A stretch of 64,000 nucleotides of DNA from Lytechinus pictus (GCF_037042905.1 NC_087255.1:14074001-14138000), one strand, 5' to 3'. Positions 644-57,776 are shown, numbered from the stretch's first letter. Notes: generated from the letters alone by a model not told the origin. Program-made: numbers and translations.

Positions 644-988
644 ATTACACTGCGACATATCTGCAATCAGGTGCATCTTATTCAGTCGACATACCACGCA
701 ACTACACAAGACGATTTTACCACGCAACCGTGCTACAAACAAACGATACGAATGGATTTCGAATCGTGTTCCAATATTTATATCTCTATTCTAGTCATCG
801 AATCCAAATAGGGGCAGGTACTGATCCGTCTGATCAACAATCTGTCATCACAACCATCAATGGATATAGAACTTGCTGCCCTGTTGATGTCTACGTAGAG
901 ACCAATAGGATGTGGATTGCTGTCATAGGAGGTCTGACTTACACCAATCTTGAGATTGAAGCGGACATCGTTGCTTTCAACATTTCAA
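644..988 (+). CDS. Exon A1: divergent CUB-like domain
   Basis: TAG acceptor 641-643, GTGAAT donor; 345 nt phase 1-1; FRIVF..IQIGxGxDP..ITTING..MWI motif. Confidence 0.88.
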
Positions 989-1246
989 GTGAATATTGAT
1001 ATTTTACTAGCAGTTTTATATTGTATAAGTATAGAAAAACTCGGTCCTGCCAACTTTCATTAAAAAATTATAAACCGATTAAAATATTAGCCTATTTTAA
1101 AGTAAATGAGATAGAAACACATTGAAATTAAGGATCAAAATGGTTGTGATCAGAAAATGTCAGTACACCTAGAATAAAGCATTGTCTGAATGTTGTGCTC
1201 ACATAGCAGTGCAATTTCTTCCTTCCCCCTTCTTTCTCCTTATCAG

Positions 1247-1345
1247 CTCTGTTTAATTGCCCGAGGAGCAATATGAACGTGTTATCAGATGTGCTGTGTG
1301 ATGGAGTGTATCATTGCGATCATTACGAAGATGAATTGGCATGCA
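1247..1345 (+). CDS. Exon B1: LDLa module (LFNCPRSNMNVLSDVLCDGVYHCDHYEDELAC)
   Basis: Polypyrimidine+CAG, GTAAGT; 99 nt; CDG..C...EDE..C. Confidence 0.9.
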
Positions 1346-2095
1346 GTAAGTCAAATCAAGAAGCATTCCTGTCTCTTGCGTACTTTTTATTCCATTTGCT
1401 TTCTATTTTGAGTAATTATGATTAAAGTATACTGATAGTGACAAAAAAAATCAAAATCAATATTTTGAGTGAAATATATTTGTCATCCGAAGTAGGAAGC
1501 TGGACGACCGCGATCATTCGCTTGCAAACTTACAGTATATACCATCATCTGGCAAATAATGTAGAGCCTGATACTTATGATGTATGAGTACACCTTTATG
1601 GCAGTCACACTGTTTGCTTTCACCCAGGTGTGCAAAAAACTGGTTATCATTATAATAGGCAAAAGCCTATAAATAAGAGAAACAAATAACTTCATCAGAT
1701 TCCCCTATACTTGTATCATTAGTTTTTGTCATTATAAGCCTTCATAAATCATAGAAATAAGGCATGTACTACCACTTGCACCGGAAGCAATGTGTGATTG
1801 GATAACACAGGTGAGTTCACTTTCCACATGTTCCAGGAACGTTAGATTTTTAATATGTTGACGTAAACCAGAACCTCATCTCAGAAAGATTTGTATAACA
1901 TTTAAATCAAACTGAAAATGCATTTAATAAAAAATTCCTTTCACTTAATTATACAGATATGAATCAATTGCAATCTGATTTACACTCCTACAAGCCGTTA
2001 TGAAATAATCGTGTGCTTAATAGACAAGCCGTAAATAAAGAGCAAAATGAGTCTTTAACAGGTTATTGTATGTGTCTTCCTCTGCACCCTCTCAG

Positions 2096-2437
2096 ATTAC
2101 TCAGCGACGTATGTACAATCAGGTGAATCTTATTCAATCGACATACCACGCAACTACACAAGACGATTTTACCACGCAACCTTGCTACAAACAAATGATA
2201 CGAATGGATTTAGAATCGTCTTCCAAAATTTCTATATCAGACATACCAATCAAATCCAAATAGGGACAGGTACTGATCCATCTGATCCAGAGTCTGTCAT
2301 CACAACTCTCTTTGGATATCGAAGCTCTTCTCATGATGTTTATGTGGAGACCAATAAGATGTGGATTTCTGTCATAGGAGGACTGGCTGACACCAATCTC
2401 TTCATAGATGTTGACATCTTTGCTATTGATCTCTCGA
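2096..2437 (+). CDS. Exon A2: CUB-like domain
   Basis: CAG acceptor, GTAAAT donor; 342 nt; open frame. Confidence 0.87.
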
Positions 2438-2796
2438 GTAAATAAATTTCATGCGACTTCACTTTCGTGGAGTTATATGGTATATAATTGGTAGGGCAAA
2501 GTTCAAAACATGAAATGTAACCACTTTAATGTTGAGTAATGAATCAAATCTTTAAAGATTGTCAAAACCTGCCACTTTTCACGCAAAAATTATAAAATTG
2601 ATGAGAATAAAACCTTTTCGACGGTAGTATGAGGGGTATGAGTAATATATCTAACAAAAATAAAACAAAACAGTAACACGGGTAGATTGAAGGTAGCAGT
2701 TGTAATCAGCAAATGCCATTGAATAATGCATTGTTATAACTTTCTGCTCATATAGCCGTACGATCTTTTCCTTCCCTTCTTTCTCCTCCAAATCAG

Positions 2797-2895
2797 CTCT
2801 TTTTAGCTGCCCAGTGAGCAATATGAACGTGTCATCAGATGTTCTATGTGATGGAGTGTACGATTGCGATCATTATGATGATGAATTGGCATGCA
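2797..2895 (+). CDS. Exon B2: LDLa module
   Basis: CAG/GTAAGT; 99 nt; LFSCPVSNMNVSSDVLCDGVYDCDHYDDELAC. Confidence 0.9.
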
Positions 2896-3848
2896 GTAAG
2901 TCAAATATAGAAGCATTCCTGTCCATATTGCGTACTTTTTATTTCATTTGCTTTCTAATTTGAGTAATAATGATTAAAGTATACTGATAATGAAAAAAAA
3001 AATCAAAATCAATATTTTGAGTGATATATAATTGTGATCCGAAGTAGGAAACTGAACGACCGCGATGTTTCGGTGGCAAACTGACAGTACCATCATTTGC
3101 TATAAATGTAGAGCTTGATACTTGATTTTTGAGTACACCAATATGGCCGTCACTCTGTTTGCTTTGCAAAACTGGTTATCATTATAATAGGCAAAGGCAT
3201 ATAAATAAGAGAAACATACCTTAATCAGATTCCCCTATACTTGTATCATTAGTCATTGTCATTATAAGCCTTCATAAAATCCTAGTAATAAGGCATGCAC
3301 TACCACTTGCACTGGAAATATTGTGTGATTCGATAACACAGGTGAGTGCACTTTCCACATGTTCCAGGAACGTTTAACTTTTAATGTGTAGAAGATAAAC
3401 CAGGACCTCATCTCACAAAGATTTGTGAAACATTTCAATCGAACTGAAAATGCATTTGATAAAGATTCCCTTCACTTAATTATACAGATATAAATCAATT
3501 GCAATCTGAGATTGTATGATATGATTTACACTCCTTGTAAGTGCCGGGCTAGCGACAAGCCGTTATGAAATAATCGCGTGCTCAATAGACGACAAGCCGT
3601 AAATTAGAAGCAATCTTAGTCAAAATGAGTCTTTAACAGGTTATTGTATATGTTTCTTCCTCTGAACCATCTTAGATTATCCAGCGACGTATCTGCCATA
3701 AGGTGAATCACATTAAATCTACATACCACGCAATAGTAATGGAATGTTGTCACACTGTGTATCACAGTGTTGTGATTGTGTTTTCTTTTTGGTAGGTTGG
3801 GTCAAACATCTTATTCATTACCTTCATTTCTCTCGATTTTATACATAG

Positions 3849-4193
3849 ATTACACTACGACGTATCTGCAATCAGGTGAATCTCATTCAATCGACATACC
3901 ACGCAACTACACAAGACGATTTTACCACGCAACCGTGCTGCAAACAAACGATACGAATGGATTTCGAATCGTGTTCCAAGATTTCTATATCAGATCTACC
4001 AATCAACTCCGAATTGGGACAGGTTCTGATCCCTCTGATCCAGAGACTGTCATCACAACTATCTATGGAACTACATATTGCTGTCCCTGGGATGTCTACA
4101 TAGAGTCCAATGAGATGTGGATTGGTGTCATAGGAGGACTTTATGACACCACTCTTGAGATTGATGCAGACATCGTTGCTTTTGACCTTTCAA
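3849..4193 (+). CDS. Exon A3: CUB-like domain
   Basis: TAG/GTAAAT; 345 nt; within ORF 3776..4273. Confidence 0.87.
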
Positions 4194-4466: not shown

Positions 4467-4565
4467 CCCTGTTTGATTGCCCGAGGAGCAATATGAACGT
4501 GTCATCAGATGTTCTGTGTGATGGAGTGTACCATTGCGATTATTATGAAGATGAATCGGCATGCA
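4467..4565 (+). CDS. Exon B3: LDLa module
   Basis: CAG/GTAAGT; 99 nt. Confidence 0.9.
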
Positions 4566-5514: not shown

Positions 5515-5859
5515 ATTACACTACGACGTATCTGCAATCAGGTGAATCTCATTCAATCGACATACCACGCAACTACACAAGACGATTTTACCACGCAACC
5601 GTGCTGCAAACAAACGATACGAATGGATTTCGAATCGTGTTCCAAGATTTCTATATCAGATCTACCAATCAACTCCAAATTGGGACAGGTACTGATCCCT
5701 CTGATCCAGAGTCTGTCATCACAACTATCTATGGAACTACATATTGCTGTCCCTGGGATGTCTACATAGAGTCCAATGAGATGTGGATTGGTGTCATAGG
5801 AGGACTTTATGACACCACTCTTGAGATTGATGCGGACATCGTTGCTTTTGACCTTTCAA
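5515..5859 (+). CDS. Exon A4: CUB-like domain (near-identical to A3)
   Basis: TAG/GTAAAT; 345 nt. Confidence 0.85.
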
Positions 5860-6132: not shown

Positions 6133-6231
6133 CCCTGTTTGATTGCCCGAGGAGCAATATGAACGTGTCATCAGATGTTCTGTGTGATGGAGTGTACCAT
6201 TGCGATTATTATGAAGATGAATCGGCATGCA
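6133..6231 (+). CDS. Exon B4: LDLa module
   Basis: CAG/GTAAGT; 99 nt. Confidence 0.88.
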
Positions 6232-8570
6232 GTAAGTAAAATATGGAAGCATTCCTGCCTCTTGCGTACTTTTTATTTCATTTGCTTTCTAATTTGAGTA
6301 ATAATAATTAAATTATACTGATAATGAAAACAAAAATCAGAATCAATATTTTGAGTGATATATAGTTGTCATCCGAAGTAGGAAACTGAACGACCGCGAT
6401 GTTTCGGTGGCAAACTGACAGTACCATCATTTGCTAATGTAGAGCCTGATACTTGATGTACGAGTACACCATTATGGCCGTCACTTTGATTGCTTTGCAA
6501 AACAGGTTATCATTATAATAGGCAAAGGCCTATAAATTAGAGAAACATATACCTAAATCCAATTCCCCTATACTTGTATCATTAGTCATTGTCATTATAA
6601 GCCTTCATAAAATCATAGTAATAAGGCATGCACTACCACTTGCACTGGAAGCATTGTGATTGGATAACACAGGTGGGTGCACTTTCCACATGTTCCAGGA
6701 ACGTTTAACTTTTAATGTGTAGAAGATAACCAGGACCTCGTCTCACAAAGATTTGTGAAACATTTCAATCAAACTGAAAATGCATTTGATAAAGATTCCC
6801 TTCACTCAATTATACAAATATAAGTTAATTGCAATCTGAGATTGTATGATATGATTTACACTCCTCGTTAAGTGCCGCGCTAGCGACAAGCCGTTATGAA
6901 ATAATCGCGTGCTCAATAGACGACAAGCCGTAAATTAGAAGCATTGTTGGTCAAAATGAGTCTTTAAAGCTCGTGGATAGTGTTGGTAAAGGATACAAAA
7001 ATTCCACTTGAATTGATCTTTTCCATTGAATAACAATTGCTGATAATAGTTCAATGAGAAATTGATAAAATTTCTTCTTGGAAATATTAAAATTTCAAAT
7101 AAACACTGAGAAATGAAATCATTTTCCTCGCTGAATTTAAACAGCATTTGGCTGAATTTACGGGCACTCACATAGCGCCCACTATCGTCCACGACTGATT
7201 TTCCCACCTGTTCGCCGATCGCTGGCCATTCCACTTTTACCAACCCGAAATATCCCTGCGAGCGTAGTCTGCTAATTCCGTGTGTACGCTCGCCAGTCGT
7301 TGTTATACCATGGTATCCGTCGAGTTTCTCCCCCAGCGAGTTCGGCGAGGAGCACAGTACAGGCAACGGTAACATTGTAAATAGATTGGTTAGAGAATAA
7401 ACCGGGATAATAATATAAAATATGTGGACTTACTTACCCTTATGATGTCCCTCCAACCTGTAGTTCACATGTTACTTAAGTTTGTTTTGACGTTCATGTA
7501 AACGTATATTCATGAAAACGTATTGGAGATGTTTCTGTGAAAATTTTGGCTACAAATTTTCTCGTGCGACAAGATGCAAGATTGGTTGAACCACGGGATA
7601 CATTGCACTACACTGCGACCGACATTGGCCACGCTCGCTGAGCAAAACATTCACATACACATTTTTGCGGGTATGACATTATCTTTATGGTGTACGATGA
7701 TTGTGGTCATGTTTTTCACGTCATATTTCAACGCATGCATTGGGGAAGGGAAATGGGAAGAAAAAGGGAGAAAAGAAAGAAAGGGAAAAGTAAACAAAAG
7801 GAAGAAAACAAGAAAAGGAAAAGAAAGAACATGGAGAGAAGAAAGGGAAGGAAAAGGAGGAGACTGATGTCGGCCTACTAGTGAGAAAGAACACTCGCGA
7901 AATACTAATAAATGATGGGGATTAAAAATATATATACATAAGAGATTGGAAAATGGAACGGGAATTTATCTCGGGAATGGGAAGGAAATGAGGCATAAGG
8001 AAACAGTAAGTTAGAATGGAACGAGCTAATATGATAGCAGGGGCGGATCCAGCTTTCGCCAATAATGGGGGGGGGGAATTTTTTCATCCATATTTTCCAC
8101 GATCGACCGCTATAAGCAGGAGGGGGGGGGCTGGGCACTTTTTTTCCAAAACCGTGTACAAAAACGTAAAAATTACCATAGGATTGTGATTTTTTGCGTG
8201 GTCAGCCCCACCCCCCCCCCCCGACTTTGCAAACCGTTCCGCGGCCCCTGTAACAGTCAGCTTTATTCTTATAAAACAACATAAATGTATATTCCTATAA
8301 GTCCTGTTCAAAAGTACGAGCGTATAAAGTGAGAGCTAAATTTTTTTTGAAATGTCATATTTTTCCTGAAAAAAAAAGTTCTGAGTAATGTTTTTGATCC
8401 TGAGCAAGATTCGTACAACTAATAACTACTGCGAACATGAACGTGAAGCGCGAGCCTGATAGAAAAGGACCAGTTCTGATTGCAGTATAGCCATGACGAT
8501 ACGTAGGCCTATTTCAACAATCGAATAATGTGAGTGCGAAGTGCGAGCCGATCATTTTTTACATTCAAAC

Positions 8571-8837
8571 CGCTAGCGTACCTACGGGGGGGGGGGGCAG
8601 TCTGTCCCCCTGACGAGCCACAACCCATGCAAAAGACGTATCCCTGCCCCCCCCCCCTCAGTGACGAGCTTGAAAGACCTGTTTTGCCCCCCCCCCCCCT
8701 GACAGATTTGAAGACATTTATTGCCCCCCTGACGAGCTTGAAGACCTTTTTTTTTTTTTTTTTTTTTGCTTGTCAAATTTTTTGGCGGAGGGTTTTGCCC
8801 CCCCCCCCCCCTGTGGAAAATCCTAGGAACGCCACTG
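8571..8837. mobile_element. hAT-type MITE with 8-bp TSD ATTCAAAC
   Basis: TSD at 8563-8570 and 8838-8845; TIR-like C(G/A)STRGCGT..CTA; second copy 14121-14366. Confidence 0.8.
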
Positions 8838-9755
8838 ATTCAAACCAAGAAAATTGACATTCTAAGCATTTTTTGTATTCCTGAACTGGATAGGTATATA
8901 ACTAAACAATACGAGCGCTAAGCGCGATGGGAAAAAAATGAGATTTAGAGCTAAAAACGAGACACTATACTAGCATGACTAGTATTCGTATTTTGTAATT
9001 CGTGAAGATGGGTATAATTAGTTATCTTCCTACATCTATAAGTGCGAGCAGAAAATTTTTGATATTTTGATCTGAAAACGTCAATATAAGCACTAGTTTC
9101 AAACAATGAAAATGAAAATTGTAAATTGGAGTTGGATCGCACTTAAGATTCGAGCGCGAAGCGCGAGCTGATATTCTAAGGACATTTTGTCATCATATGA
9201 AAATGGTAATTATCTTCCTATTAGTCTCCCTAATCACGAGATGAAACTTGTCGACATTCTGAAAAAAGGACAATATAATTGTTGGGAATTCATGAAATTG
9301 TTATCTTATTTACTACTCTGATAAGCCCGATGAGAGCGAGAAATTAGTTGATATCAAGTTCGGAAAACTGGATATTCTTAGCATTTTTGTATTAATGAAT
9401 AGAAGGCATTGGTTGATACATCTTTAACAATTAATGCAAGCACAAATCACGAACCGAAAATTTTGATAAATTGTCATGAAAAGGGATTTAGAATAGTTTG
9501 TTATAGAGTTAAATTTCTCACCAATCAAAATGCGAGCGCGCATCGCTAGCTGATAGGTTTTGACAATTAGACATGAAAAGGAATATTTTGAGAATTTATG
9601 GAATATATGAGAACTAGAGAATGGGTACTTGACAAATAATGCTAGCTAGCGCGTAGCGTGAGCTGCATTGATAATGAGACCATAAAACGGATTACGGCTG
9701 CACATTAAAAGAAAATGTAAATCAAACAAAATAATAACGGCTCGATGTCCGAGCT

Positions 9756-9976
9756 NNNNNNNNNNNNNNNNNNNNNNNNNNNNNNNNNNNNNNNNNNNNN
9801 NNNNNNNNNNNNNNNNNNNNNNNNNNNNNNNNNNNNNNNNNNNNNNNNNNNNNNNNNNNNNNNNNNNNNNNNNNNNNNNNNNNNNNNNNNNNNNNNNNNN
9901 NNNNNNNNNNNNNNNNNNNNNNNNNNNNNNNNNNNNNNNNNNNNNNNNNNNNNNNNNNNNNNNNNNNNNNNNNNNA
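9756..9976. other. Assembly gap (221 N)
   Basis: Run of n. Confidence 1.
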
Positions 9977-11617
9977 GATTTGTATCTCGACATCAAACAT
10001 GCGAGCGCGAGCGAAAAACTTATATAATGATATGAAAGATTCTTTTTTTTCCAAGCCTTCCCCTCACCTTATTTTATTTACTTGCCTTTCTCCTCTATCC
10101 CCCATTCTTTTTCTCTCCTCTTTTTTCCCTTTTCCTTTTTTAGAATTTTCCTTTTTTCGTTTTCTTCATTTTACTTTTTTCGTTTTTTCCGCCACTATAG
10201 GGGGACCCGGGTACTTCGCCCCCTAGATCGGCCTATGTGATAGCGATGAAGCTGAATTGAAAAATGAAGAGAAGGGATTAAGGAAAAGTGGAATTGGGCC
10301 CATAAAGACACATCCGGATTGACGTTTGAGGATTATTAAAAAAAAAAAAAGAACGGGAGTAAAAAAATGTGATGACGTATGTGCCATGAAGTCTATATCC
10401 TATTTAATGCTAAATCCTAGCCAAAGAATTTGGGGGCATACCCCCCCCCCCCCCCCCATTTTCGCTTTCACCGCCGTGTATGTATGGGTGTCCAGTGTTG
10501 GTCTTCCCGGGGTTGGATAACTGACACAGTTAAGTTTGGTCCCTGATGTGAGTATTTCTTTTTTACATTTAGGCCTATTATCTATCATTATCATTATGAT
10601 TATTTTTTTTTGAGGGGGGGGGGGGGTGTCAGTTCCATAACCAGTCTAAAATTTGTATGGGGGACAGAATTGCACAAAAGGATAAAATTATTAATAGAAA
10701 AGCTGCGATCGAGCGAGCAATTTTTTTTACCCTTTGAATTCAATACAAAAATGTAACTTTGTGTTCAGTATATTTTGACGTGATACTTGTCATGTCATGT
10801 TTCACCCTTCTCTTTTACTATTCTTTTCTCTTCAAGGGGGGGGGGGCAATGCACCAGGATGGGGGTAGACCAAGACTGAGTGTTATAAGGATTATATCAG
10901 CAATGCTAGCGCGAGTTTAGATGCTACCAGAATCATGATCATAATAATAATGTTACTCCCTCCTTATCATGATCATACTTGTCATTATAATTCATAAAAA
11001 ATTATGTCGTTCGAAGTAAGGGAAGTTTATCATGTTAATGTATCCCCTATCACCATGGATCGACACTCACCACCCCCCCCCCCTCCCCCGAACTCTGAGC
11101 AATTCCTGGAGGGTAGTGATGGAGCCGGACTCGTATTATTTTAGAGAAAAATGGGGAAAGGGGAGTATAGGGAGTGTGCATGCGCGTAAATGGATCTCAA
11201 TTTATTTGAAAGGGGGAAGAGGTCATCTATGTCAACTAGTGGGTTATTCATGTTTCATTCTAGGTGTTTTTTGTACAGTGTAGTGTAATTTTAGGGTATA
11301 TCCAAGGAGATATCACCTCTAAAAGTTAGAGGTGATATCTCCTTGGTATATCTTAATTTTTGGATGTATATGGGAATTCATGAATATGGTATTATGAAAA
11401 ATGATAGAAATTAAGTGCAAGAGATGTTTCTTTTATCATTTTCTTCCCTAACTCATCTTTTCATTCCCTCCCTCTTCTTTTTTTTTACTGAGCTTCCCTT
11501 TTCGCCGCCAATAGAGGGGGGGCCTAACTGGCCGCTTCGCCCCCATGGATTTGAAAGCCTTGCCTATATACATAATGATCCTGTCTTCATTACAGAATAT
11601 TTTCACTTTAAATTTCC

Positions 11618-12600
11618 ACAAAGGCGGATTTAGGGGGGCGAGGGAGTAGGACCGTCCCCCTTTTTGGCGGAGCAAAAGCAAAATGAAAAAAAGGGGGAAA
11701 GAAACAAAAACGAAAAAGAAGGGGGAAAAGAAATAAGTGAAATATGAGGAGGAAGACGAATGAATAAAATAAGATGAGGGGAAGACTTGGAAAATAAAAC
11801 AAATCTTTCATGTCACTTGATAAAATTTTTGCTCACTGTTCGTGCTCGTATAGCCTGGTAGGTTATTTACATATCATGCACAATATGGACTTTGAAGTAT
11901 CAAATTTTAAAGTCAATATACAGAACATACTTATGCTCAGTAATCGAACTTTCATTTCAAAAGTTACAAATTGATTGTTCTGTAAAAATGTCACTTTTAT
12001 GGTCTGAATATTAGTATCTTCTACTCGCGCTGTGTAAAATTTGATTGGTTTATAGGTAGGCCTATATACCTATATTATTTTCCAGGTCTACCTATACGCT
12101 CGCGCTTCGCTCTCGCATCATTGTTCAGTGATATACCTATCCTGTTCACGTTTACAAAAAAAAACTTAGAATTTCCCTTCTTTAGGTAAAAAACATTGCG
12201 CTCGCACCATTTTATTGTTGAAACATGTAACGCATTCATTGCTAACTGCAAGAAGTCCTTGACAAAAAAAAATTCTACTCACTCTTCCAGTAATTATTTG
12301 CATACACAATGTGTTCAGGACCACAAACATTGCCTAGAATGATCAAATTTTAGGACAAAACACATACAATTTCAAAAGCAAAATTCGTTCGCGCTTCGCG
12401 CTCGAACTATTCAGATAAGGCTTATGAGATTATTATATATTCTTGCTGATTTTTAAGAATAAAGGTAGAGAGGTGCACTGTTAGGGCTATACCCCTTCAA
12501 ATAAACATACACAAATCAACTTCGAGCTGCCGATCGGGGAAAATATGGCAGAAACATATATGATCCGCCCCCGATCAGCGAAGGCTGGATCCGTGTCTGT
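11618..12600 (-). mobile_element. hAT-like element, GCGCTTCGCGCTCGC family
   Basis: Inverted homolog of 8038-10237. Confidence 0.55.
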
Positions 12601-13451
12601 ATCCGATATATTATTTGTAAAGATGCCTCTACAAAGGAGCTATGTAGTCCTTTACTAAATTGTATTTCTGCTCATACTCATCAGAAAGGTCCAAATTGGA
12701 AACTCGAAACTGAGCATGTACCCATTGCCATTTTGCCAGGGTATAGGTGCATGAACAACTTTTGTTTCTTAGCAATCGATTTATCAGTATAGTTGATGTA
12801 ATTTTCAGTCCATATCAAATTGGAAAGAATGTGTCAGGCAAGCTCCCAATTTATAGTAAAACGGTTCTTATAAAATTTTACGTTGTGAAGAAAGTTTGAA
12901 TATGGTCACTCGTTTCGTGTTAGATGTCAAGTAAGATTTTTATTTTATTTTATTGGAACGGGTAAAATGAACATTGAGCATTGTCACAGCACCCCCAGTA
13001 ACAATAAAGATCATCCTCCGTGGCCAGGTCCATGATTATTTCAATGCACTATATGAATTTTGTTGCAATAATTTAGGCCGATAACGCAACATATTTTTTT
13101 ACAGCTTTTCTCTCATAAATTCAGTCCGATTGACAATATCCGGATATTTATCCATTTTATAATGAGGGACGTACGTATATGTGCATGACTTGTTTGTCAA
13201 GTTAGAAACGGAAAGTTGCAATAAAGTTTTGAAGGCTCCATCATTGTCAGAACAAATTCCCAACGACGCGATCTAGCCCCCCCCCCCCTTTCTTCAGTTC
13301 TTTCTTTCTTTATCTACTAATTTCTGTCTTGCATTTTTCCTTCTCGTTCTCAGTTTCTTCTTGCTTATAAATGACTTGAAAATCAGTGCTTATAATTAAA
13401 TCATTGTCACTAGCTGCAATTTTTGCACCGCGCACATGGTTCAATGTTTAA

Positions 13452-13940
13452 AGGTCCCGTCCACCCCAGAAAGTGTTGATTTGAATCAATTAATAGAAAA
13501 AAATCTAGCAAGCATGATTTTGAAAATGTCACCAAAACCGGATGTGAAATGAATGAAATGAAATTGTTTGAATTATATAATCTTAGAGATTTGAAAATAA
13601 GGACCAACTTGACTGCAACCATTAAAATGTAATCCACAACGGTTATTCCACATATTCAGGAACAAATAACACTTTTTGTCACATTTCAATGAGGAGGAAA
13701 TTAGATAGTCATATTGCATATACAACTAAAAGAGGTGTATGCCGTCATCAGTCATATACAGAACAGGATGTGCATATAAATTACTGTTCTGTGAAATTAT
13801 GAACATACACAAATCTTACATCCGATTATCATGATCATAAAATCATAATCATAACAAAAAAATTCATCCGATTTTGATGAAATGTTCAGTGCTTGGATTT
13901 TTCTTTTTATTCAAATAAACCTTGGGATGGACTCCACCGA
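13452..13940. mobile_element. Kolobok-type MITE copy
   Basis: TTAA|AGGTCCCGTCCACCCC start; long imperfect inverted arms. Confidence 0.65.
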
Positions 13941-14120
13941 CTCCATTGGACTTCGTTCAATCGATCGCTGTGCTTCCTTTATGTGGATACAAAACATATA
14001 TTTGGACGGTTAGTAGCAGATCAAGTGACAGTTTGCCATATTTTTCCACATGAATATGACCCCGCCCCCAAAAAAACACGTTATAAAAATATATATCTCA
14101 TTCGAGTCTAAAGTATATAG

Positions 14121-14366
14121 CACTAGCGTACCTACGGGGACATTCTGCCCCCCCCCCCCTGACGACCCACCTACAAAGGACGTATCCCTGCCCCCCCCCC
14201 CCCTGACGAGCTTGAAGCCCCCCCCCCCCTTTTTTTTTTGCTTGTCAATTTTTTTCTGGTACGATATCTTTTTTTTGTGATTGAAGACCTTTTTTTTTGC
14301 TTGTCAAATTTTTTGGCGGACGGCTTTGCCCCCCCCCCCTTGTGGAAAATCCTAGGTACGCCACTG
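14121..14366. mobile_element. hAT-type MITE, same family as 8571-8837
   Basis: CACTAGCGTACCTACG...CCTAGGTACGCCACTG; TSD not preserved. Confidence 0.7.
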
Positions 14367-16261
14367 ATAAGAAGGTAAAATCTGCGCACATCGATCACTG
14401 AATGTATGAATAGAGATCTGAGAAGTGAGACAGATATTCATAACAGTATAACATTTGGTGACCCATAATATGGCATCAGTGCCCCCCCCCCCCATTGCCA
14501 GTTATAAAGAGAAAGGGGGAAATTGAAATATGGAGAAAAATATGACGATCGAGGCCCTAATTATCGACGTTACACCCAACCCAAATTTCTTTTTTTTTGG
14601 CAGGCCTAGTTAGTTTATTTAGTGATTTACCATGTGAAATGACCTACATCCAGTTATGGAAAAATATACTTTCAAACTGAATGTCATTATTTACAGAACT
14701 TTATCCAATAATTAATTACAAGTTCATTACTATTTCCATAGGATTGCCAGTTTTCCAAAATTTGACACTGGCATGCTGAGGTTTAGTTAGAGATTATCTC
14801 TGGGCAGGAGATGAGTTCTTGTCCATAGGTCCATGCCCTGACAGAACACGAGAAAAGAGCACATGCATGGAACAACACATAAAAACCAGTTGACTGAACT
14901 ATGTCCATGGGCCATGCATGTGCATGGTGCAGGGCAAATGTGTTTTTGACCTCCTTAGTCCTTACGTAACCTCAAGGAGCTTCCAGCTCCTTGGTAACCT
15001 GCAGTGATTCTTCAACACAAATACACACATCCCTGCCTCGCACACACACACACACACACACGTATCCAGGCCTACTGTACTACCAACACACACTGCCAAG
15101 GCGCATACTGTACTAGTCTATAAATTCAGACACAGTTTACCCAAAGACGGTTAATATATCATTTTAGTGAGAAATCAGTGCATTTCCAAAACATAAACAT
15201 GATGCATAATCTTGGAATTTCCTTTGTAAGGGTTTCTTTCTGTTGGTTTTATTTCCCTTTTTTCTCTTGGTTCATCAGTATCATAGAATAAAACGTTTTT
15301 ATGAATCGATCTGAAACAATTATGAGCTGAGACTAAAACGCGGATAGTCAGAGAAGAACCCAAAAGAAGTTTTTTTTCTTCCAATTCTGTGCTAGTTGTA
15401 TTCATTCTGAATTGAGTTTTATGAATTGTTCCCGTGTTATCTCGGCAGTGAGAGAGCATATTTATGTGCAACAGCGTATCACATCGTGGTCCACTTCTTT
15501 TTTTTTTTTTTTGAAATGGGGACGATCGGGTTTGTTTATCGAATGCAAGCCCCAGCCAAGGCAAGAGCATGCAAGCTGCAAGGAAGGTAGGAAAAACAGA
15601 GTGGTGTTGCATGTTGTGCATAGCGCATGTGAGGAACGTATATACTGATTCTAATAGTAATATCGATATGCGATCGATGCTTTTTAGATCTAAAGTCTGC
15701 TCTGCCGTTCATTGTAATGTGATGCAAGAAAATCAGGAAAACGCAATGTATCAACGAGCTTTATAAAACTGACTGACAACTCAATTGTGTAGCGGACTAC
15801 ATTATCGTTCTCGCGTAGCACACGCACGGCAGCAGCGGTGATGCGCACTGTGGTGTCTGTGCGTTTCAATTCTCGGGTATCCCGGTAGAATTGATTCACT
15901 CATAAAAGAGCATAATTTATCATGAAAAACACCATTTCATTTCATATCATTTACATCATGACTGTTTAAGGGCATACCCATTCATATTATATACAAATTA
16001 GTTAGAATGGTGACAGGCCGATTTCGAGGAATTTACCAAAACTATCCACCCTCTTTAACAGGTTATATGTCTTACTCTGCACCATCTTAGATTATCCAGC
16101 GACGTATCTGCCATCAGGTGAATCACATTCAATCTACATACCACACAAAAGTAATGGAATGTTGTAACACTGTATCACAGTGTTGTGATTGTATGTTCTT
16201 TATGGTAGATTAGGTCAAACATCTTATCCATAACCTTCCTTTCTCTCGATTTTATTAATAG

Positions 16262-16600
16262 ATTACACTGCGACGTACCTGCAATCAGGTGAATCTTATT
16301 CAATCGACATACCACGCAACTACACTAGACGATTTTACCACGCAACCGTGCTACAATCAAATGATACGAATGGATTTCGAATCGTGTTTCAAGATTTGTT
16401 TATCAGATATACCAATCAAATCCAAATTGGGACAGGTACTGATCCATCTGATCCACAGTCTGTCATCACAACTCTTTATGGTACTAGAAGCTCTTCTGAT
16501 GATGTCTATGTGGAGACCAATAAAATGTGGATTGCTGTCATAGGTCTGACTTTCACCAATCTTGAGATTGATGCGGACATCATTGCTTTCGACCTTTCAA
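16262..16600 (+). CDS. Exon A5: CUB-like domain
   Basis: TAG/GTGAGT; 339 nt. Confidence 0.88.
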
Positions 16601-16857: not shown

Positions 16858-16956
16858 CTCTGTTTAGCTGCCCAGTGAGCAATATGAACGTGTCATCAGA
16901 TGTTCTATGTGATGGAGTGTACCATTGCGATCATTATGAAGATGAATCGGCATGCA
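16858..16956 (+). CDS. Exon B5: LDLa module
   Basis: CAG/GTAAGT; 99 nt. Confidence 0.9.
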
Positions 16957-17743: not shown

Positions 17744-18088
17744 ATTATTCAACGACGTATCTGCAAGCAGGAGAGTCACATTCAATCGACATATCACGCA
17801 ACTACACCAGACGATTTTACCACACAACCTTGCTACAAACAAATGATACGAATGGATTTCGAATCGTGTTCAAAGATTCATATCTGTATTCTAGTAATCA
17901 AATCCAAATAGGGAAAGGTACCGATCCGTCTGATCAACAATCTGTCATCACAACCATCAATGGATACAGATACTGCTGCCCTGTTGATGTATATGAAGAG
18001 GCCAATGAGTTGTGGATGTCTGTCATTGGAGGACTGACTTACACCAATATCTTTATTGACGTTAATATCATTGCTATTGACCTGAGAA
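17744..18088 (+). CDS. Exon A6: CUB-like domain
   Basis: TAG/GTAAAT; 345 nt. Confidence 0.87.
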
Positions 18089-24475: not shown

Positions 24476-24574
24476 AATCCTTTCATTGTCCAGTCTCGAG
24501 CAGAAATATATCAGTAACCTTGGCATGTGATGGATATTATGACTGCGATAATTTCGAGGATGAATTATATTGTA
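24476..24574 (+). CDS. Exon B6: LDLa module (SFHCPVSSRNISVTLACDGYYDCDNFEDELYC)
   Basis: TAG/GTAAGT; 99 nt. Confidence 0.9.
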
Positions 24575-26319: not shown

Positions 26320-26670
26320 ATAACCCAGTTACACACCTCGAGGAAGGCCAATCACATTCTATCAGAACGCCATCTTTCACAAGAGAATTCTACAATACAA
26401 CCTTGTTAAAAGCAAATACTACAAATGGATTTCGAATTGTGTTCCATCGTTTGTATCTCAATTATTATGATGACGAAATCCGAATAGGGACAGGGAACGA
26501 TCCATCTGATATCCAGTCTATTGTAACAACTATCCATGGATATGCATACTACGAGGATGATATGTACATAGATAACCATAAAATGTGGATTGTTGTCATA
26601 GGATCAAAACAGTACAGTCATTCATATCATCTTGATCTGGACATTAGTATTACTGCCATCGATTTATTTA
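26320..26670 (+). CDS. Exon A7: CUB-like domain
   Basis: TAG/GTGAGT; 351 nt. Confidence 0.88.
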
Positions 26671-27037: not shown

Positions 27038-27136
27038 ATTCTTTTCCTTGTACGTCGTCTTACATGAACGTGCCAGTGACGTTGGTTTGTGATGGATATT
27101 ACGACTGCGATAATTATGAAGACGAATCGTTATGCG
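27038..27136 (+). CDS. Exon B7: LDLa module (SFPCTSSYMNVPVTLVCDGYYDCDNYEDESLC)
   Basis: CAG/GTAAGA; 99 nt. Confidence 0.9.
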
Positions 27137-37933: not shown

Positions 37934-38281
37934 AATATCCCGCAAGCTTTCTACAAAAAGGTGAGTCATATTTTATCTACCTCACACACAACACAACGCG
38001 CAGACGATCATACGATACTCACCTTTTGCAAACGGATACTACGAATGGATTTCAAATTATATTCAGGGATTTATATCTCTATTATGGCGAACAAATCCAG
38101 ATAGGGAAAGGTACTGATCCGTCTGATCTACAGTCTGTCATTACAGCCATCAATGGATATAGACATTGCTGTCCCAGTGATGTTTATGTAGAGAGCAGTG
38201 ATATGTGGATCGCGATCATAGGAGGCATGGAATACTACAACCTTGAAGTATATGCTGAGATAATATCTACTGATCTTTCCA
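37934..38281 (+). CDS. Exon A8: CUB-like domain
   Basis: CAG/GTAAGT; 348 nt. Confidence 0.88.
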
Positions 38282-38566: not shown

Positions 38567-38665
38567 CTTTATATAGATGTTCGATTTCTGACAAATTTGT
38601 TCCAACGTCAGCCCTTTGCGATGGATTTTACCATTGTGATCATTTTGAGGATGAATTAGCGTGCA
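38567..38665 (+). CDS. Exon B8: LDLa module (LYRCSISDKFVPTSALCDGFYHCDHFEDELAC)
   Basis: TAG/GTAAGT; 99 nt. Confidence 0.9.
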
Positions 38666-39325: not shown

Positions 39326-39721
39326 ATCACTCAACAAGGTTTTTAGCCTCTGGCCAGTCCACTTTCATCACCGCTTATTTCGTGGACAGCGGACATTTTG
39401 GTATATCTGTTCTAAGCACAAACGCGACTGCAATATTTCGACTCGAGTCCCAGGAGGATCATCGTCAAAACAGTGAGGAAACAATTCTAATAGGAACCGG
39501 AAATGACGTCAAATCAGCTATTAGAACGTTCCATGGAGATACTCCATACCATGCTGATATATACGTAGGATCAAATGTGATTTGGATTGCTATTGTTGGT
39601 CATAAGGACTACAACTACTACGGGAACTATCATGACTCTTATGAGAGTTATTATGACTCATATGACTATAGTTATGACAATAGTGACATCAATCTCAAGG
39701 TCACTGCAATTGACAGGTCTG
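39326..39721 (+). CDS. Exon A9: CUB-like domain with Tyr/Asp-rich insertion
   Basis: TAG/GTAAGT; 396 nt. Confidence 0.86.
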
Positions 39722-40309: not shown

Positions 40310-40589
40310 TAGATGATATTCCAATCACATCCATTAAGTTCTTATTTCAATAATAAAAGGACAAATGGGTACTGGCAGGAAGTAATTCCTCAAATAAGCT
40401 GTGAGCGCCGGAATGGGTTGACCTTCTTGGACGGGGTAATATAGGAACGCCTTGAGCACTTAACAATTTGGATACGTGCGCTATACAAATCTTATATTAG
40501 TATTATATATATAATACAGAAAAATATATGTATTCGTAGGTAATCCTAGATGTGATTTCAATTTTTTTTTGTATTTACATTCACAATAG

Positions 40590-40688
40590 ATCTACAGGAA
40601 TGCGGAATGACTGGCCTGTCTTTCTCAAATAATGACCGATGTGATGAAGTATTTACGTGTCCAGACTTTGCCGATGAAGAAGAGTGCA
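40590..40688 (+). CDS. Exon B9: LDLa module (LQECGMTGLSFSNNDRCDEVFTCPDFADEEEC)
   Basis: TAG/GTGAGA; 99 nt. Confidence 0.86.
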
Positions 40689-42196: not shown

Positions 42197-42583
42197 GTCA
42201 TCCATCCATTTTTCTCCTTGAAAACGAAAATTACACAATTGCCTTTTCCGATATCAAAGCAGAGACCTACAATGAAACACTTTTTAAGACCAGCGCTTCA
42301 AATGGATTTCGAATAAGGTTTTTGGATATCTACCTTGCTTGCTATGATTATTATAGTTATGGACAATGCGACGATGCTGTCATTCAGATAGGCACCGGAT
42401 ATGGTAGTGCTAACAGCCGATCGATCGTGAAAACACTTCGTGCTTTTACTTATTTCGAGGACGATGTTCATGTGGATTCCAGTGAGATGTGGATATCAAT
42501 CAGCGGTATATGGAGATATGACACGTATGGCTCAAACGCGTACGGCTATGGCGAGATGGAATTGAGCACTGCCAGGTTGAATA
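42197..42583 (+). CDS. Exon A10: CUB-like domain
   Basis: CAG/GTACGT; 387 nt. Confidence 0.84.
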
Positions 42584-43599: not shown

Positions 43600-43698
43600 G
43601 TCTGAGACCCTGTGCCAACTCGAATCGGGTGATTTCTCAAGACAATATCTGTGACGGATTTTATCAATGCGATGATTATTCGGATGAAATATCTTGCG
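43600..43698 (+). CDS. Exon B10: LDLa module (LRPCANSNRVISQDNICDGFYQCDDYSDEISC)
   Basis: AAG/GTAAGT; 99 nt. Confidence 0.87.
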
Positions 43699-44349
43699 GT
43701 AAGTATTCAAGAGCTACTGACTGCTTTAAGAAAACAAATTTATAATCATTATAGTAATTCTTATGCATATTATTGAAACCAACATCGTTATTGTTTTTAG
43801 TATATTTATCATTATCATTATTATTAGCATTAGCGTTGTCATTCCTTTCCCCGTTCTCCTTCTGCTTCTTCTGTTTCTTGTTCTTCTAGCTCTTCTCCTT
43901 CCTGCAATTCTTCCTCTGCCCATCCTTCTTTGTATTTTTTATTTAATTTATCCTCATCCTTCACATTCTTCTTTTTTTTTATTTATTATTATTTGCCTTG
44001 TTTCTACATTTACTGTCATATTTTCTTTTCGTATTTTAGATTTCTACTGCTTCTTATTGATCTCTGCCATTACAAGACGCATCTGGTTCATTGAGGTCTG
44101 CTTTTTGTCGATACAAAAAATACCTGAAGCTCTTCACTGTTTGCCTACCCTCATACATTGTATTCCAGGGGGGGTACTCAAATTATTTTTTTTAAGGGGG
44201 GTGTGCCTCATAAAACCCTGAAATGGGGGTCTAAGGAACCCCCGGGATTGTATTCCCCATAATGTTAATGTTATATACATAATCTAATAATGTTATATAG
44301 TTATTTTCCCCAAGTAGTAACTGATGTTGTTTTGGTTTGTATTTCAAAG

Positions 44350-44697
44350 ATAACGCAGAGGTAGTTTTGCATGAAGGAGAATCGTTTGGCATAAAGGTTG
44401 TAAATGCTGCACGTAGATCATATAATACTACGATACTTCAAACGAATGTAACATTGGGATTCCGAGTGCATGTCGGCTCCTCCGACTACGGGGATTGGTA
44501 CGGAGCTCGTATTGCAATTGGTACACGTAACAACTCAAGTCCAATCTATGAATGGTCCTCGACCAGTAACTACAATTATTTCTCCAATGACTATGATGTG
44601 TATGTGACGACGAATGAAATATGGACTGCCATCATTGGTGGTGTTTACCATGCGTATGGGTCTATGGAATTCAATGTCACTTCGGTTGATATACCAG
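44350..44697 (+). CDS. Exon A11: CUB-like domain
   Basis: AAG/GTAAGC; 348 nt. Confidence 0.84.
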
Positions 44698-45751: not shown

Positions 45752-45853
45752 ACTTGTATACCTGCCCGGGAAACTCCCATATCGGAATTCCTCAGAGTAG
45801 ACTGTGTGATGGAAGGTATGACTGCAGCAATTATGAAGATGAATCGTCATGCA
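45752..45853 (+). CDS. Exon B11: LDLa module (LYTCPGNSHIGIPQSRLCDGRYDCSNYEDESSC)
   Basis: CAG/GTAAGT; 102 nt. Confidence 0.9.
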
Positions 45854-49661: not shown

Positions 49662-49903
49662 TATATATTTATATATGTATATGTATGCATATATATATAT
49701 ACGATAGACCAGGCAATATCTGTTCTATTATATAGTCTACAATGTATATGGATTAGCCATCGGAGATTGCATTCTTCATCATTCTCGCTCTCTGATTAAC
49801 CCCAAATTCTTTCTGCAGCTCTGATCCATCTACGTCATAATGTAAAAAATTCGGAAAATACCTCAAACGCGTTCTTCATGCAATCGACGCGATAACACTA
49901 GCG

Positions 49904-54104: not shown

Positions 54105-54518
54105 ACGAATCTTCAATACTTATAAACGACGAGACGTTTTACTTCAGTGTCTACACTTGGGTCTACGATTATCAAAGACTTTACAGAGATTGGCTCTTCG
54201 AAACGAACACTGGAAATAGCTTTCGTGTTGACCTGTATATAAACGTGGAATGCTATAACTATTACTGTAGACAAGGTCATGAAGGTGGACATGATGGAGT
54301 GTTCAGTCTTATTATTGGGACAGGAAAAGATTCAACCAACCAGGAGTCAGTTGTTCAAACATTCACTACCGAGATTACTTATTGGCCATACTTTAGGAGT
54401 TATGAAGAGTTGTATGTTGACAGCCAAGAAATATGGATTGTTTTGATTGGTCCGCAGTTTGTTGGATATGGTGACAACAGCGCAATTAATTTAGAAATAA
54501 ATGGCGTTAACATGTCTG
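54105..54518 (+). CDS. Exon A12: CUB-like domain (most divergent)
   Basis: TAG/GTGAGT; 414 nt; LIIGTGKD and EIWIVL motifs. Confidence 0.83.
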
Positions 54519-55848: not shown

Positions 55849-55947
55849 GATGGATACCATGCAAGGATTCAAAAACAAGTGTGTCTCCAGATTACGCATG
55901 TAACGGTCGGTACGAATGCGACGATTACGGAGATGAAATATCATGTG
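55849..55947 (+). CDS. Exon B12: LDLa module (WIPCKDSKTSVSPDYACNGRYECDDYGDEISC)
   Basis: TAG/GTAAGG; 99 nt. Confidence 0.87.
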
Positions 55948-56377
55948 GTAAGGGACTGTTAGACTGCTATTACATTTAAACAGTTATGACTAAACTTCTA
56001 AATACTTGTATACTAAAGAATCAGAAAAAGAAAGGCGCCATTTGTGTCTAACTCGTAAAGAATAATCGATCATGTGAATTTCAATGGTATTAGTTGGTTA
56101 AGTCAAGATTAAGCTCAAAACATAATGTTAAGGGGTCTAGATACTAGATATTGATATGAAACTGAAGAACCGTTCTAAGTTAAATCAAGATACCTCCCCC
56201 CCCCCCCCCCCTGGATTGGGTAAAAATAAATGGTGAGGTTCGTATTTACTCTTATTGAAAGGATATAAAGCAAATTATAGAATAAGCAAAATAATATGTA
56301 TATATACACTTTCAATAAAAGTAAATCCCAACCTCACACACAGGATGAGAATATGGGGGAAAATGAAGTGTGACCAG

Positions 56378-56536
56378 TGGGTCGTTTCATAAACCTGTTC
56401 GTAAGTTAAGAGCGACTTTAAGAACGACTGGTGATCCTTTCTTACGCGCTTAACCATCGCCAATGAATATATCATTTACCACAAGAAAGGATCACCAGTC
56501 GCTCTTAACTTACGAACAGCTTTATGAAACACCCAC
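56378..56536. mobile_element. Harbinger-like hairpin MITE (same family as 42832)
   Basis: Shared CGTAAGTTAAGAGCGACTTTAAGAA.GACTGGTGATCC. Confidence 0.7.
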
Positions 56537-56539
56537 CTG

Positions 56540-56806
56540 GGCCCCGTCTTATAAAGAGTTGCGATTGATCCGATCAATCACAACTATGGCAAGCTAGTAT
56601 CGTCAAAATCTACAATTCATGTTTGTTTTCAAATGTTTTCTCGATATTGTATATTTAAACATATATTGTTGTCTTGACAATTCAGTGTGCTCCCCTTTGT
56701 TTACAAAGGACGATGTGCAAATTTACTGTGGAAAAATATGACAATGATGGATTTCCATATAGTTGAGGTTTGATCGATCAATCGTAACTCATTGTAAGAT
56801 GAGGCC
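56540..56806. mobile_element. PIF/Harbinger-type MITE, TSD CTG
   Basis: CTG|GGCCCCGTCTTA...TAAGATGAGGCC|CTG. Confidence 0.75.
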
Positions 56807-57425
56807 CTGGTCTCTATTTACCGTTCTTAATTGATTTATTTTGTTTTTGTTTTTTAATCTGATATAAAATGCAACCACGAAAGAAAATTTTTTTAAAATG
56901 CCTTAAACATTTCAGGTGTCATAATAGATTATGCTAATAGCTAATTAAATACGAATAACGCACAAAGGTAATCGACTGTTCAAAAAGATTCATTGGCAGC
57001 TACACTTTTAAAAGATTGGCATGTACTTGAAGATAAGTACTTGATCTGTTTTCCAAAACTTTAGAGAGGAATCTTTGTGGGTATAGATGTGGGTACTTTT
57101 TTTTTTTTTTTACATATATGTACCTTTTACAAAGCAATTATTCATGAATTTATTTTATTAATGTAGATGATGAAGATATGGTTCTTTGTAATTTTCAACA
57201 TTTCTGCCTCTGAAAATACTCTCGTTGTAAGTTTACAAGTGTAATATTTGCTCTATATTGTTCTTGATTCTCTTTTCGTGTGTCAGGTTTGTTATACTTG
57301 TCTCTTCTAACGGAGCATTGAATAAATGAAATGAAATTGAATTTTTGAATTGAAATTAATACGCTTTTATTTTAACTTTAAAAATGTGCGCTGATTTAGT
57401 CTGCTGTTTATTGTGTTATTGACAG

Positions 57426-57776
57426 ATCGTTCACCGACCATCATCAGTGAAGGGGAATCTTATGCCATCTCAGATTTGGAATTGTTTGAACGGGAATACC
57501 ATGCCTTAATTATACAAACCAACCAATACTCTAGATTTCATATCAGGTTCCAACATATCTCTCTTGGCTGTTGTGATGAGCGTGTGCAGATCGGAACGGG
57601 GACTGATCTATCTGACGAAGATTCCGTTATAATGTCCATCCAGGGATATACGAATTATGTCGATGATGTTTATGTGAATACTACCCACATGTGGCTTGTC
57701 ATGACTGGTCATAAGGACTCTGACAACTATCCTAATGGTCATGTCGATATGATTGTCACTGCTACCTCTCTTTCTG
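57426..57776 (+). CDS. Exon A13: CUB-like domain (last; no LDLa follows)
   Basis: CAG/GTGAGT; 351 nt. Confidence 0.87.

Follow-up and report, generated by a model that had tools for sequence, protein, structure and literature searches.

Cysteine-free CUB domains with tyrosine-rich loops alternate with LDLa-like modules in a predicted adhesion G-protein-coupled receptor gene of Lytechinus pictus

Orphans make up most of the adhesion class of G-protein-coupled receptors (GPCRs), and the way in which the large outer parts of these receptors select partners is still unsettled. CUB-bearing members are known, ADGRG6 and ADGRB3 among them. LDLa modules stand beside CUB in several other receptors; the canonical form is ~37 residues long, has six Cys and carries an acidic Ca2+ cage, CDGxxDCxDxSDE, at its C terminus. 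Here we describe a stretch of 64,000 nucleotides of Lytechinus pictus DNA (GCF_037042905.1, NC_087255.1:14074001-14138000; "the window" below, one strand, numbered from its first letter), in which CUB-like exons between positions 644 and 57776 alternate with LDLa-like mini-exons. The data establish the fold, the domain order, the splicing, the linkage to seven-transmembrane (7TM) exons through a homologue and synteny, and the position, composition and rates of the loops; ligand binding and signalling are inferred. With a probability of roughly 60%, the CUB-LDLa array belongs to an ADGRG-like adhesion GPCR, in which Tyr-rich loops L5, L7 and L9 at the ligand pole of each CUB unit would mediate multivalent binding coupled to signalling.

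The closest described receptors are those of the ADGRG subfamily, with ADGRG6/GPR126. Among solved structures, human ADGRG2 (E 1.8e-42) and ADGRG6 (E 5.6e-41) come nearest to the GAIN-7TM part of P0070, the homologue of the window gene in Lytechinus variegatus. ADGRG6 likewise carries N-terminal CUB and SEA domains ahead of GAIN-7TM, and P0070 has a cleavage site between HL and T followed by TNFAVLM. ADGRG6 has one canonical, Ca2+-binding, disulfide-bonded CUB domain together with PTX and HormR, whereas the window gene has 21 cysteine-free CUB domains alternating with LDLa, followed by EGF and Ig. CUB also stands beside LDLa in LRP3/LRP12, NETO and the stems of matriptase and enteropeptidase, and the CUB domains of enteropeptidase and TMPRSS6 were among the best sequence and structure matches of the units. 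These are single-pass proteins (receptors or proteases) whose 2-5 modules carry canonical cysteines, unlike the window gene, for which a 7TM product with 21 pairs is predicted. Nordstrom et al. 2008 (PMC2246102) listed amphioxus adhesion GPCRs that have CUB, LDLa and Ig domains. They resemble the window gene as invertebrate-deuterostome receptors with a CUB, LDLa and Ig N terminus, a likeness that does not imply orthology, and no long alternating array, cysteine-free CUB or Tyr-rich loops were reported there. For sea-urchin CUB-LDLa adhesion GPCRs, only general amphioxus statements were found in the literature. A search on the RefSeq locus names of the family found nothing, and nothing was found that describes a GPCR with long alternating CUB-LDLa arrays, Tyr-rich loops on cysteine-free CUB domains, or the echinoid cluster presented below.

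The exon array and the receptor exons downstream

The window has ~36% G+C, is eukaryotic in character and contains few long open reading frames (ORFs). A six-frame jackhmmer search seeded with one unit detected 13 homologous segments free of stops (E values from 1e-18 to 2e-59), each of them on the + strand. Each unit is one exon bounded by AG and GT in phase 1-1, with one codon base at the 5' end and two at the 3' end. Position 644 is the first base of the unit 1 exon and 57776 the last base of the unit 13 exon. The translation of unit 1 is identical to a stretch of the L. pictus RefSeq protein P0002. In the alignment of the 13 units (A1), F38, I55, G56 and W90 do not vary, and FRIxF, IGTG and MWI are recurrent motifs. 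The exons are given below, placed by the unit search, splice bounds and A1 except where other evidence is named.

644..988, + strand, CUB-like exon 1, ninth unit of the gene (8 upstream of the window)
2096..2437, + strand, CUB-like exon 2
3849..4193, + strand, CUB-like exon 3, young unit, structure modelled (see below)
5515..5859, + strand, CUB-like exon 4
16262..16600, + strand, CUB-like exon 5
17744..18088, + strand, CUB-like exon 6
26320..26670, + strand, CUB-like exon 7, first of the older diverged units
37934..38281, + strand, CUB-like exon 8
39326..39721, + strand, CUB-like exon 9, whose Tyr/Asp-rich L9 has 28 residues; 39326-39720 covered by spliced contig X2 record 8
42197..42583, + strand, CUB-like exon 10, in which L5 and L9 are long and L5 contains two Cys; splice bounds, A1 and RNA
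44350..44697, + strand, CUB-like exon 11; X1 record 7 covers 44349-44697
54105..54518, + strand, CUB-like exon 12, longest loops, structure modelled (see below)
57426..57776, + strand, CUB-like exon 13, last unit

Twelve LDLa mini-exons alternate perfectly with the CUB exons in the window. The same alternation is present in RefSeq proteins of L. pictus, L. variegatus and S. purpuratus, where the module has ~35 residues and the pattern C..CDGxYxCDxYEDExxC. The modules match Pfam Ldl_recept_a (PF00057) from positions 7-10 to 37 only, which are its C-terminal 28-31 positions. When six modules were tested against PF00057, two scored above the cut-off and three below. They carry four Cys, not six, and the Ca2+ cage is partly kept as CDGxYxCDxYEDE. 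Judged from these matches, the module appears to be an N-terminally truncated, 4-Cys form of LDLa. Cores run from Cys to Cys.

1258..1344, + strand, LDLa-like module 1, core (exon ~12 nt longer 5'); Pfam positions 8-37 of 37, E 0.0022
2808..2894, + strand, LDLa-like module 2, core; sequence pattern
4478..4564, + strand, LDLa-like module 3, core; sequence pattern
6144..6230, + strand, LDLa-like module 4, core; sequence pattern
16869..16955, + strand, LDLa-like module 5, core; sequence pattern and Pfam scan
24499..24573, + strand, LDLa-like module 6, core, 6.4 kb past CUB exon 6; sequence pattern
27049..27135, + strand, LDLa-like module 7, core; Pfam 27.7 bits, above the cut-off
38578..38664, + strand, LDLa-like module 8, core; sequence pattern
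40589..40688, + strand, LDLa-like exon 9, bounds set by RNA; joint 40688>42197 in three runs, X2 record 8
43600..43698, + strand, LDLa-like exon 10, bounds set by RNA; X2 record 8, Pfam E 3e-4
45763..45852, + strand, LDLa-like module 11, core; Pfam 28.9 bits, above the cut-off
55860..55946, + strand, LDLa-like module 12, core; sequence pattern

Splicing of the array was observed directly. One 1014-nt contig joins 39326-39720, 40589-40688, 42197-42536 and 43600-43698, which corresponds to CUB9-LDLa9-CUB10-LDLa10. Spliced forms were detected in three runs, and the joint 40688>42197 (GT..AG) was present in all of them. Exon word depth in RNA-type runs was low, between 5 and 45. Mutually exclusive splicing of the Dscam type was unsupported for the four exons, which were seen joined consecutively. 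No record was found of contigs encoding the L. pictus protein P0003. For 44410-44526, within CUB exon 11, one RNA-type run contained two contigs; the first has exactly the window sequence, and the second departs from it at 10 of 117 nt. These are two co-expressed alleles or paralogues.

The array is followed by further exons, all on the + strand.

60059..60184, + strand, EGF exon 1; Pfam EGF E 7e-7
60714..60863, + strand, EGF exon 2; match to P0003 residues 813-865
61272..61559, + strand, Ig-like exon; Pfam Ig_3 E 1.6e-7
G000:C11:14138198-14150051, + strand, SEA, GAIN/GPS and 7TM exons beyond the window; matches to P0003/P0070

The SEA exon begins 198 nt beyond the window end. P0070 (1689 aa, 80% identical to P0003) comprises CUB10-13, EGF, Ig, SEA, GPS (E 3.7e-10) and the secretin-type 7TM domain 7tm_2 (E 1.9e-36), and it has the cleavage and tethered-agonist motif CACDHL/TNFAVLM (cleavage at the slash) and seven hydrophobic segments. 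No PTX or HormR domain was found in the domain scan of P0070. Exons for P0070 residues 935-1682 lie directly past the window on the + strand (G000:C11:14140925-14150051, 70-89% identity), with those matching GAIN/GPS and 7TM at G000:C11:14144521-14150051, + strand. With the eight units upstream of the window, the gene has 21 CUB-LDLa pairs and spans ~92 kb (G000:C11:14.058-14.150 Mb). By homology it is predicted to encode an ADGRG-like adhesion GPCR, with the CUB-LDLa array and EGF-EGF-Ig-SEA as its extracellular N-terminal fragment. A first-pass annotation of the window had placed the units on a single stalk. That stalk would be the N-terminal fragment of an adhesion GPCR, a context not visible to the first-pass annotation.

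The unit profile matched 97 places in the genome, and 96 of these lie on C11 within a 0.9-Mb cluster at 13.50-14.40 Mb. The cluster holds five arrays (A-E) of about 32, 15, 17, 21 and 11 units, some matches being partial, and the window gene is array D. Arrays C, D and E have EGF, Ig, SEA and 7TM exons with 70-95% identity to P0003 and P0070. After arrays A and B come 7tm_2 exons of a more distant kind (G000:C11:13648294-13654337 and 13855911-13864187, 46-49% identity to P0070), and these two arrays may belong to a second, older branch of the receptor family. Complete arrays consist of a near-identical young block and then six or seven older units, which correspond one-to-one between arrays. 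Below E 1e-30, every named match came from Strongylocentrotus or Lytechinus, together with a few unnamed ENA contigs; more distant matches were ordinary CUB proteins. Public annotation holds only fragments of the family, labelled "uncharacterized", such as L. pictus models of 667 and 1069 aa, and the present finding unites these fragments into one receptor design.

Fold of the unit and position of its variable loops

The repeated units are divergent CUB domains without cysteines in the scaffold. A profile of the 13 units, searched against 1.84 billion representative proteins, matched only 61. The best matches were uncharacterized proteins of S. purpuratus, L. pictus and L. variegatus, and the next were genuine CUB arrays such as the hemichordate cubilin-like P0020 (E 7.6e-23, 13 stretches). 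Comparison with 34 canonical CUB domains by hhalign gave a probability of 96.8% and E 2.8e-10 over 87 columns. A sub-threshold Pfam CUB match spans profile positions 8-93 of 110, and a search of PDB sequences with the unit profile returned weak enteropeptidase CUB matches only (E 0.06).

AlphaFold (AF2) models of units 3 and 12 were built from a 97-row alignment. For unit 3 the predicted local distance difference test score (pLDDT) was 93.6 and the predicted template modelling score (pTM) 0.86; for unit 12 the pLDDT was 83.9. The top 38 Foldseek matches of the unit 3 model in the PDB were all CUB domains, with template modelling (TM) scores of 0.62-0.79. They include TSG-6 (TM 0.78, root-mean-square deviation 2.6), neuropilin-2, TMPRSS6, MAP-1, C1r and PCPE-1. 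The long-loop model of unit 12 was ambiguous in Foldseek, with mixed jelly-rolls at E ~1e-4. In an exhaustive VIA-align search its top 17 matches were all CUB domains (Z 11.6-8.6), TMPRSS6 having Z 11.6. Because the VIA-align result for unit 12 and the young-unit model agree on CUB, the fold of the units is settled. The units share the jelly-roll fold with canonical CUB domains (cubilin, C1r/C1s/MASP, neuropilin a1/a2, PCPE-1, TSG-6), and the same odd-numbered loops are variable, which in those proteins hold the ligand site. They differ in being without the conserved disulfides, in the missing Ca2+ triad of the young units, in Tyr-rich inserts of up to 28 residues and in scoring below the Pfam threshold.

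Variation in length and sequence is concentrated in three zones of the unit, after FRIxF (i), after TTxxG (ii) and after MWIxxIG (iii), as the first-pass annotation had claimed. These zones contain 52 of the 57 gapped columns of A1, and most of the remainder fall in L3, another loop of that pole. The loop strings it had quoted were all found in the units: YLYSSH and RTCCP in unit 1, RSSS in unit 2, YLNYYDD, AYYED and KQYSHSYH in unit 7, ACYDYYSYGQCDD and WRYDTYGSNAYGY in unit 10, SSDYGDWYG, NYNYFSND and YHAYGS in unit 11, and ECYNYYCRQGHEGGHDG and TYWPYFRSY in unit 12. From the window and 30 loci of the cluster, 42 full units were recovered, 33 of them distinct "young" units that are 70-100% alike. 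Among the 33 young units, entropy exceeded 0.8 bit in 19 of 30 loop columns and 13 of 84 scaffold columns (odds ratio (OR) 9.4, p 1.9e-6).

In the unit 3 model, DSSP assigned strands to residues 3-6, 11-21, 25-32, 36-47, 52-57, 67-72, 82-84, 88-94 and 100-112. The variable residues 48-51 (i), 73-81 (ii) and 95-99 (iii) are the beta4-5, beta6-7 and beta8-9 connections. Since these are alternate connections of an all-antiparallel sandwich, strand parity places them at one pole, and the small indels of A1 columns 18-23 are at the same pole. In the hhalign register, site (i) corresponds to the CUB "TExxxD" Ca2+ loop and site (ii) to the "SGxxxP" loop. The hhalign match ends at the MWI strand, and with the register extended site (iii) falls on the "SDxS" loop. 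Sites (i), (ii) and (iii) are the CUB loops L5, L7 and L9. In CUB domains the loops with odd numbers (L3, L5, L7 and L9) face outward, are the most divergent and form the binding site in ligand-bound structures; the Ca2+ site lies between L5 and L9, and the second conserved disulfide links L5 to L7 (PMC8051872). Given the loop assignment and that description, the three variable places are neighbours on the classical CUB ligand face. The proposal of one variable ligand-binding face per unit holds as a structural reading, and its ligand part would apply by analogy, with L5, L7 and L9 as the most likely contact surfaces.

The composition of the loops was determined for the seven older units, 7-13, against their scaffold. 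Tyr made up 20.5% of loop and 4.5% of scaffold residues (p 3e-12), Asp 12.6% and 5.0% (p 2e-4), Gly 10.2% and 5.6% (p 0.02) and His 5.9% and 2.5% (p 0.02). For Ser the values were 7.1% and 10.9% (p 0.1). Of the Tyr/Asp/Ser/Gly richness first proposed, the enrichment was found for Tyr, Asp and Gly and not for Ser. An acidic YDDE is kept in L5 of some older units and of S. purpuratus units.

Every Cys of the units falls in a loop, and those present sit within single loops, as CC in L7 of young units and as two Cys in L5 of units 10, 12 and 13. Vicinal Cys-Cys (TCCP, YCCP) occurs in L7 of units 1, 3, 4, 6 and 8, and units 2 and 5 have Ser-Ser(-Ser) there. The L7 pair is gained or lost jointly, which suggests a vicinal or intra-loop disulfide.

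Loop turnover and its possible meaning

Substitution rates among young units were calculated by the Nei-Gojobori method over all pairs, with 95% bootstrap confidence intervals (CI). All loops together had dN 0.246, dS 0.297 and omega 0.83 (CI 0.51-1.50), compared with dN 0.073, dS 0.204 and omega 0.36 (CI 0.23-0.57) for the scaffold. The values of dN, dS and omega were 0.195, 0.131 and 1.49 (CI 0.57-9.6) for L5, 0.315, 0.548 and 0.57 (CI 0.27-1.16) for L7, and 0.235, 0.241 and 0.97 (CI 0.25-4.26) for L9. Divergence of the flanking introns among young units was 0.31-0.39, above the loop dN of 0.25. Older units were compared between paralogues and species as proteins only. Relative to P0003, a paralogue or allele, 43 of 199 loop and 40 of 436 scaffold positions of the window differed (OR 2.7, p 4e-5). 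The corresponding counts were 76 of 154 and 85 of 350 for L. variegatus P0070 (OR 3.0, p 5e-8) and 31 of 147 and 31 of 343 for L. variegatus P0071 (OR 2.7, p 5e-4). Loop change relative to P0003 was uneven. It reached 23-49% of positions in units 10-12, and the loops were near-invariant in unit 9 (1 of 48, including the 28-residue DSY-rich loop) and unit 13 (0 of 30).

Tyr-rich character was kept as residues turned over; L7 of unit 11, for instance, reads NYNYFSNDYD, NYYYFYNDYD or SYYYSYYDYG. In the long loops Tyr beside Asp or Glu (DY, EY, YD) prevails, and L9 of unit 9 is a low-complexity DSY/ESY repeat. Young units have two to four main versions of each loop: DFYIRSTNQ or YLYLYSSHR in L5, TTYCCPW, YRTCCPV or SRSSSD in L7, and LTYTNLE or LYDTNLF in L9. 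With the loops sorted into two-state classes, all eight combinations were present, and 30 distinct loop sets were counted in the 33 young units. Because all eight combinations occur, the young units are recombinant mosaics. Transcripts differed from the window by three in-frame indels, one in the L9 loop of unit 9 and one each in L5 of units 10 and 11. The differences listed for CUB11 transcripts were 7-10 nonsynonymous versus 0-1 synonymous, and those for CUB9 transcripts were 8 synonymous versus 7 nonsynonymous.

The loops show an excess of nonsynonymous change over the scaffold (omega 0.83 versus 0.36), and their residues were 2.7 to 3.0 times more often different. The further step taken by the first-pass annotation, a germline repertoire of binding sites resembling antibody complementarity-determining regions (CDRs), was not demonstrated. 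The CI of omega spans 1, introns have diverged by more than the loop dN, hardly any loop change is seen in units 9 and 13, and the young units carry few loop versions, which are reshuffled. Relaxed constraint fits the loop rates as well as diversifying selection does. The rates may reflect weak constraint on the exact sequence with composition kept, and L5 or units 10-12 may be under diversifying selection.

In the receptor reading given at the outset, each unit would present a Tyr-rich contact surface at its ligand pole, and the array would bind extracellular partners (matrix, cell surface or microbial) multivalently. Pull on the long N-terminal fragment, or its occupancy, would reach the tethered agonist and the 7TM part by way of SEA and GAIN. 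The loops would evolve under weak sequence constraint with their composition retained, and a few loop versions of the young units would be reshuffled through tandem duplication and gene conversion. A receptor on which one small module is repeated >20 times, with only the ligand-pole loops varied, would be a natural experiment on partner choice. Functional tests are realistic, as L. pictus is open to laboratory breeding and editing.

Several observations weigh against this reading. A direct Pfam scan of seven units gave none above the threshold, the best CUB score being 14.3 bits against a gathering score of 21.4 (E 0.052). Both canonical CUB disulfides, which pair four conserved cysteines (C1-C2 and C3-C4), are missing, the scaffold Cys count being zero in 13 of 13 units. 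The Ca2+ triad Glu/Asp/Asp, of which Glu and one Asp belong to L5 and the other Asp to L9, is absent from the young units, where the hhalign register places Arg/Ile, Asn/Gln and Gly, and the classical Ca2+-dependent binding mode probably does not apply in them. The adjacency of the loops is a feature of the model that rests on strand parity and homology, not on distances. For the window gene, the predicted link from array to 7TM is drawn from the L. variegatus gene model and same-strand synteny, and a single transcript joining the CUB array of the window to the 7TM exons was not observed in RNA. A raw RNA-read run (X21, 2026) had zero reads on the exons. Near-neutral loop rates would also fit loops without function.

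A more far-reaching explanation is that the loops are under diversifying selection and that the ~96 units of the cluster form a germline library of binding sites, for microbes or allorecognition, with a GPCR readout. It could draw on the excess of loop over scaffold differences in paralogues and species, the omega of 1.49 in L5, the nonsynonymous changes in CUB11 transcripts, the restriction of in-frame indels to loops, the presence of eight of eight class combinations and 30 loop sets in 33 units, and the lineage-specific, clustered family. The Tyr/Asp/Gly make-up resembles that of antibody paratopes, and as in CDRs three neighbouring loops of a beta sandwich are involved. The units differ from CDRs in having a CUB and not an Ig fold, in lacking both Ser enrichment and an omega above 1, and in showing no sign of somatic diversification, for which no search was made. 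The pooled omega and the L5 interval both span 1, loop dN stays below the intron divergence, units 9 and 13 have loops that do not vary between copies, CUB9 transcripts have 8 synonymous versus 7 nonsynonymous differences, the same few versions recur in young units, and alleles and paralogues are not separable in these comparisons. We regard this explanation as unlikely. If the loops were selected for diversity, a scaffold other than Ig or leucine-rich repeat would join the known animal recognition repertoires. A related proposal, which we consider quite doubtful, is a camarodont family of adhesion GPCRs with arrays of 11 to 31 cysteine-free CUB domains, in which a germline library of Tyr-rich three-loop sites would be reshuffled by gene conversion among the tandem exons and diversified by loop turnover between paralogues. 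If such a germline library existed, it would represent a receptor for innate, multi-paratope recognition with a direct connection to G-protein signalling.

The array could instead be a structural spacer, a long, glycosylated, mechanically extensible stalk of a mechanosensing adhesion GPCR, whose loops, held by less constraint than the rest of the CUB fold, drift, with slippage creating low-complexity Tyr/Asp-rich inserts. The near-neutral loop rates, the low-complexity repeat in L9 of unit 9, the loss of canonical Ca2+-binding residues and the general divergence of odd-numbered CUB loops (PMC8051872) would be expected of such a stalk. A Tyr content of 20%, about four times the base-composition expectation (an estimate from 36% GC), argues against drift, as do the persistence of Tyr-rich character in L. 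pictus paralogues and L. variegatus despite residue turnover, the single difference in 48 loop positions of unit 9, whose long loop is conserved between copies, and an L7 omega still below 1 (0.57). On balance we find a spacer improbable. A role in modification or cross-linking, with the Tyr/Asp loops as substrates for tyrosine sulfation or for peroxidase-made dityrosine as in the fertilization envelope, is very unlikely. DY, EY and YD dominate the long loops, and two reports (bioRxiv 10.1101/369504; PMC2114886) describe sea-urchin envelope proteins with CUB and LDLrA that are assembled and then cross-linked by ovoperoxidase. Against this role, rendezvin, SFE1, SFE9 and proteoliaisin are absent among the homologues, all of which are "uncharacterized", and the predicted protein is a 7TM receptor and not a secreted matrix protein. 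A fertilization-envelope protein of the rendezvin or SFE type was set aside as an identity for the gene, as no named relative was found and the gene points to a 7TM receptor instead.

Introns and repeats

The window contains a run of N at 9756-9975, in the intron between LDLa exon 4 (end ~6231) and CUB exon 5 (start 16262). The ends of this intron correspond to the standard 950-nt intron found in adjacent units, 6231-6967 matching its positions 1-738 (97%) and 16064-16255 its positions 749-944 (90%).

6968..16063, no strand assigned, 9.1-kb repeat insertion that splits the standard intron at ~position 740; holds the N gap and is non-coding for the gene

The 1.5 kb flanking the gap on each side come from a single dispersed repeat, which has dozens of copies at 74-97% identity. 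In at least 4 copies, on contigs C8, C14, C19 and C3, the gap flanks are collinear, in the same orientation and 92-138 nt apart. Because the flanks are collinear in other copies, the gap interrupts an intronic transposon, hides no exon and does not affect the frame. The CUB/LDLa alternation stays in register across it.

The intron from CUB exon 6 to its LDLa exon (18089-24486) measures 6.4 kb, compared with ~270 nt in neighbouring young units, and probably holds another insertion. At 39843-40566 and 42739-43100, intronic repeats reached word depths in the thousands in RNA-type runs, versus 5-45 for the exons; they are probably transcribed transposon families. A dispersed repeat of ~2.2 kb at 47495-49680 has >30 copies on many contigs at 87-97% identity, which suggests a recently active element. 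A tandem minisatellite at 29405-30263 contains three overlapping long ORFs of repeated units of the form HTLQHYIVLLPSRTHFNV..LYCYPHAHTSTLYCIA, and the 28-32 kb bin has a GC skew of -0.28. Long ORFs of 211 and 372 aa were found on the - strand at 31963-34802, in the intron between units 7 and 8.

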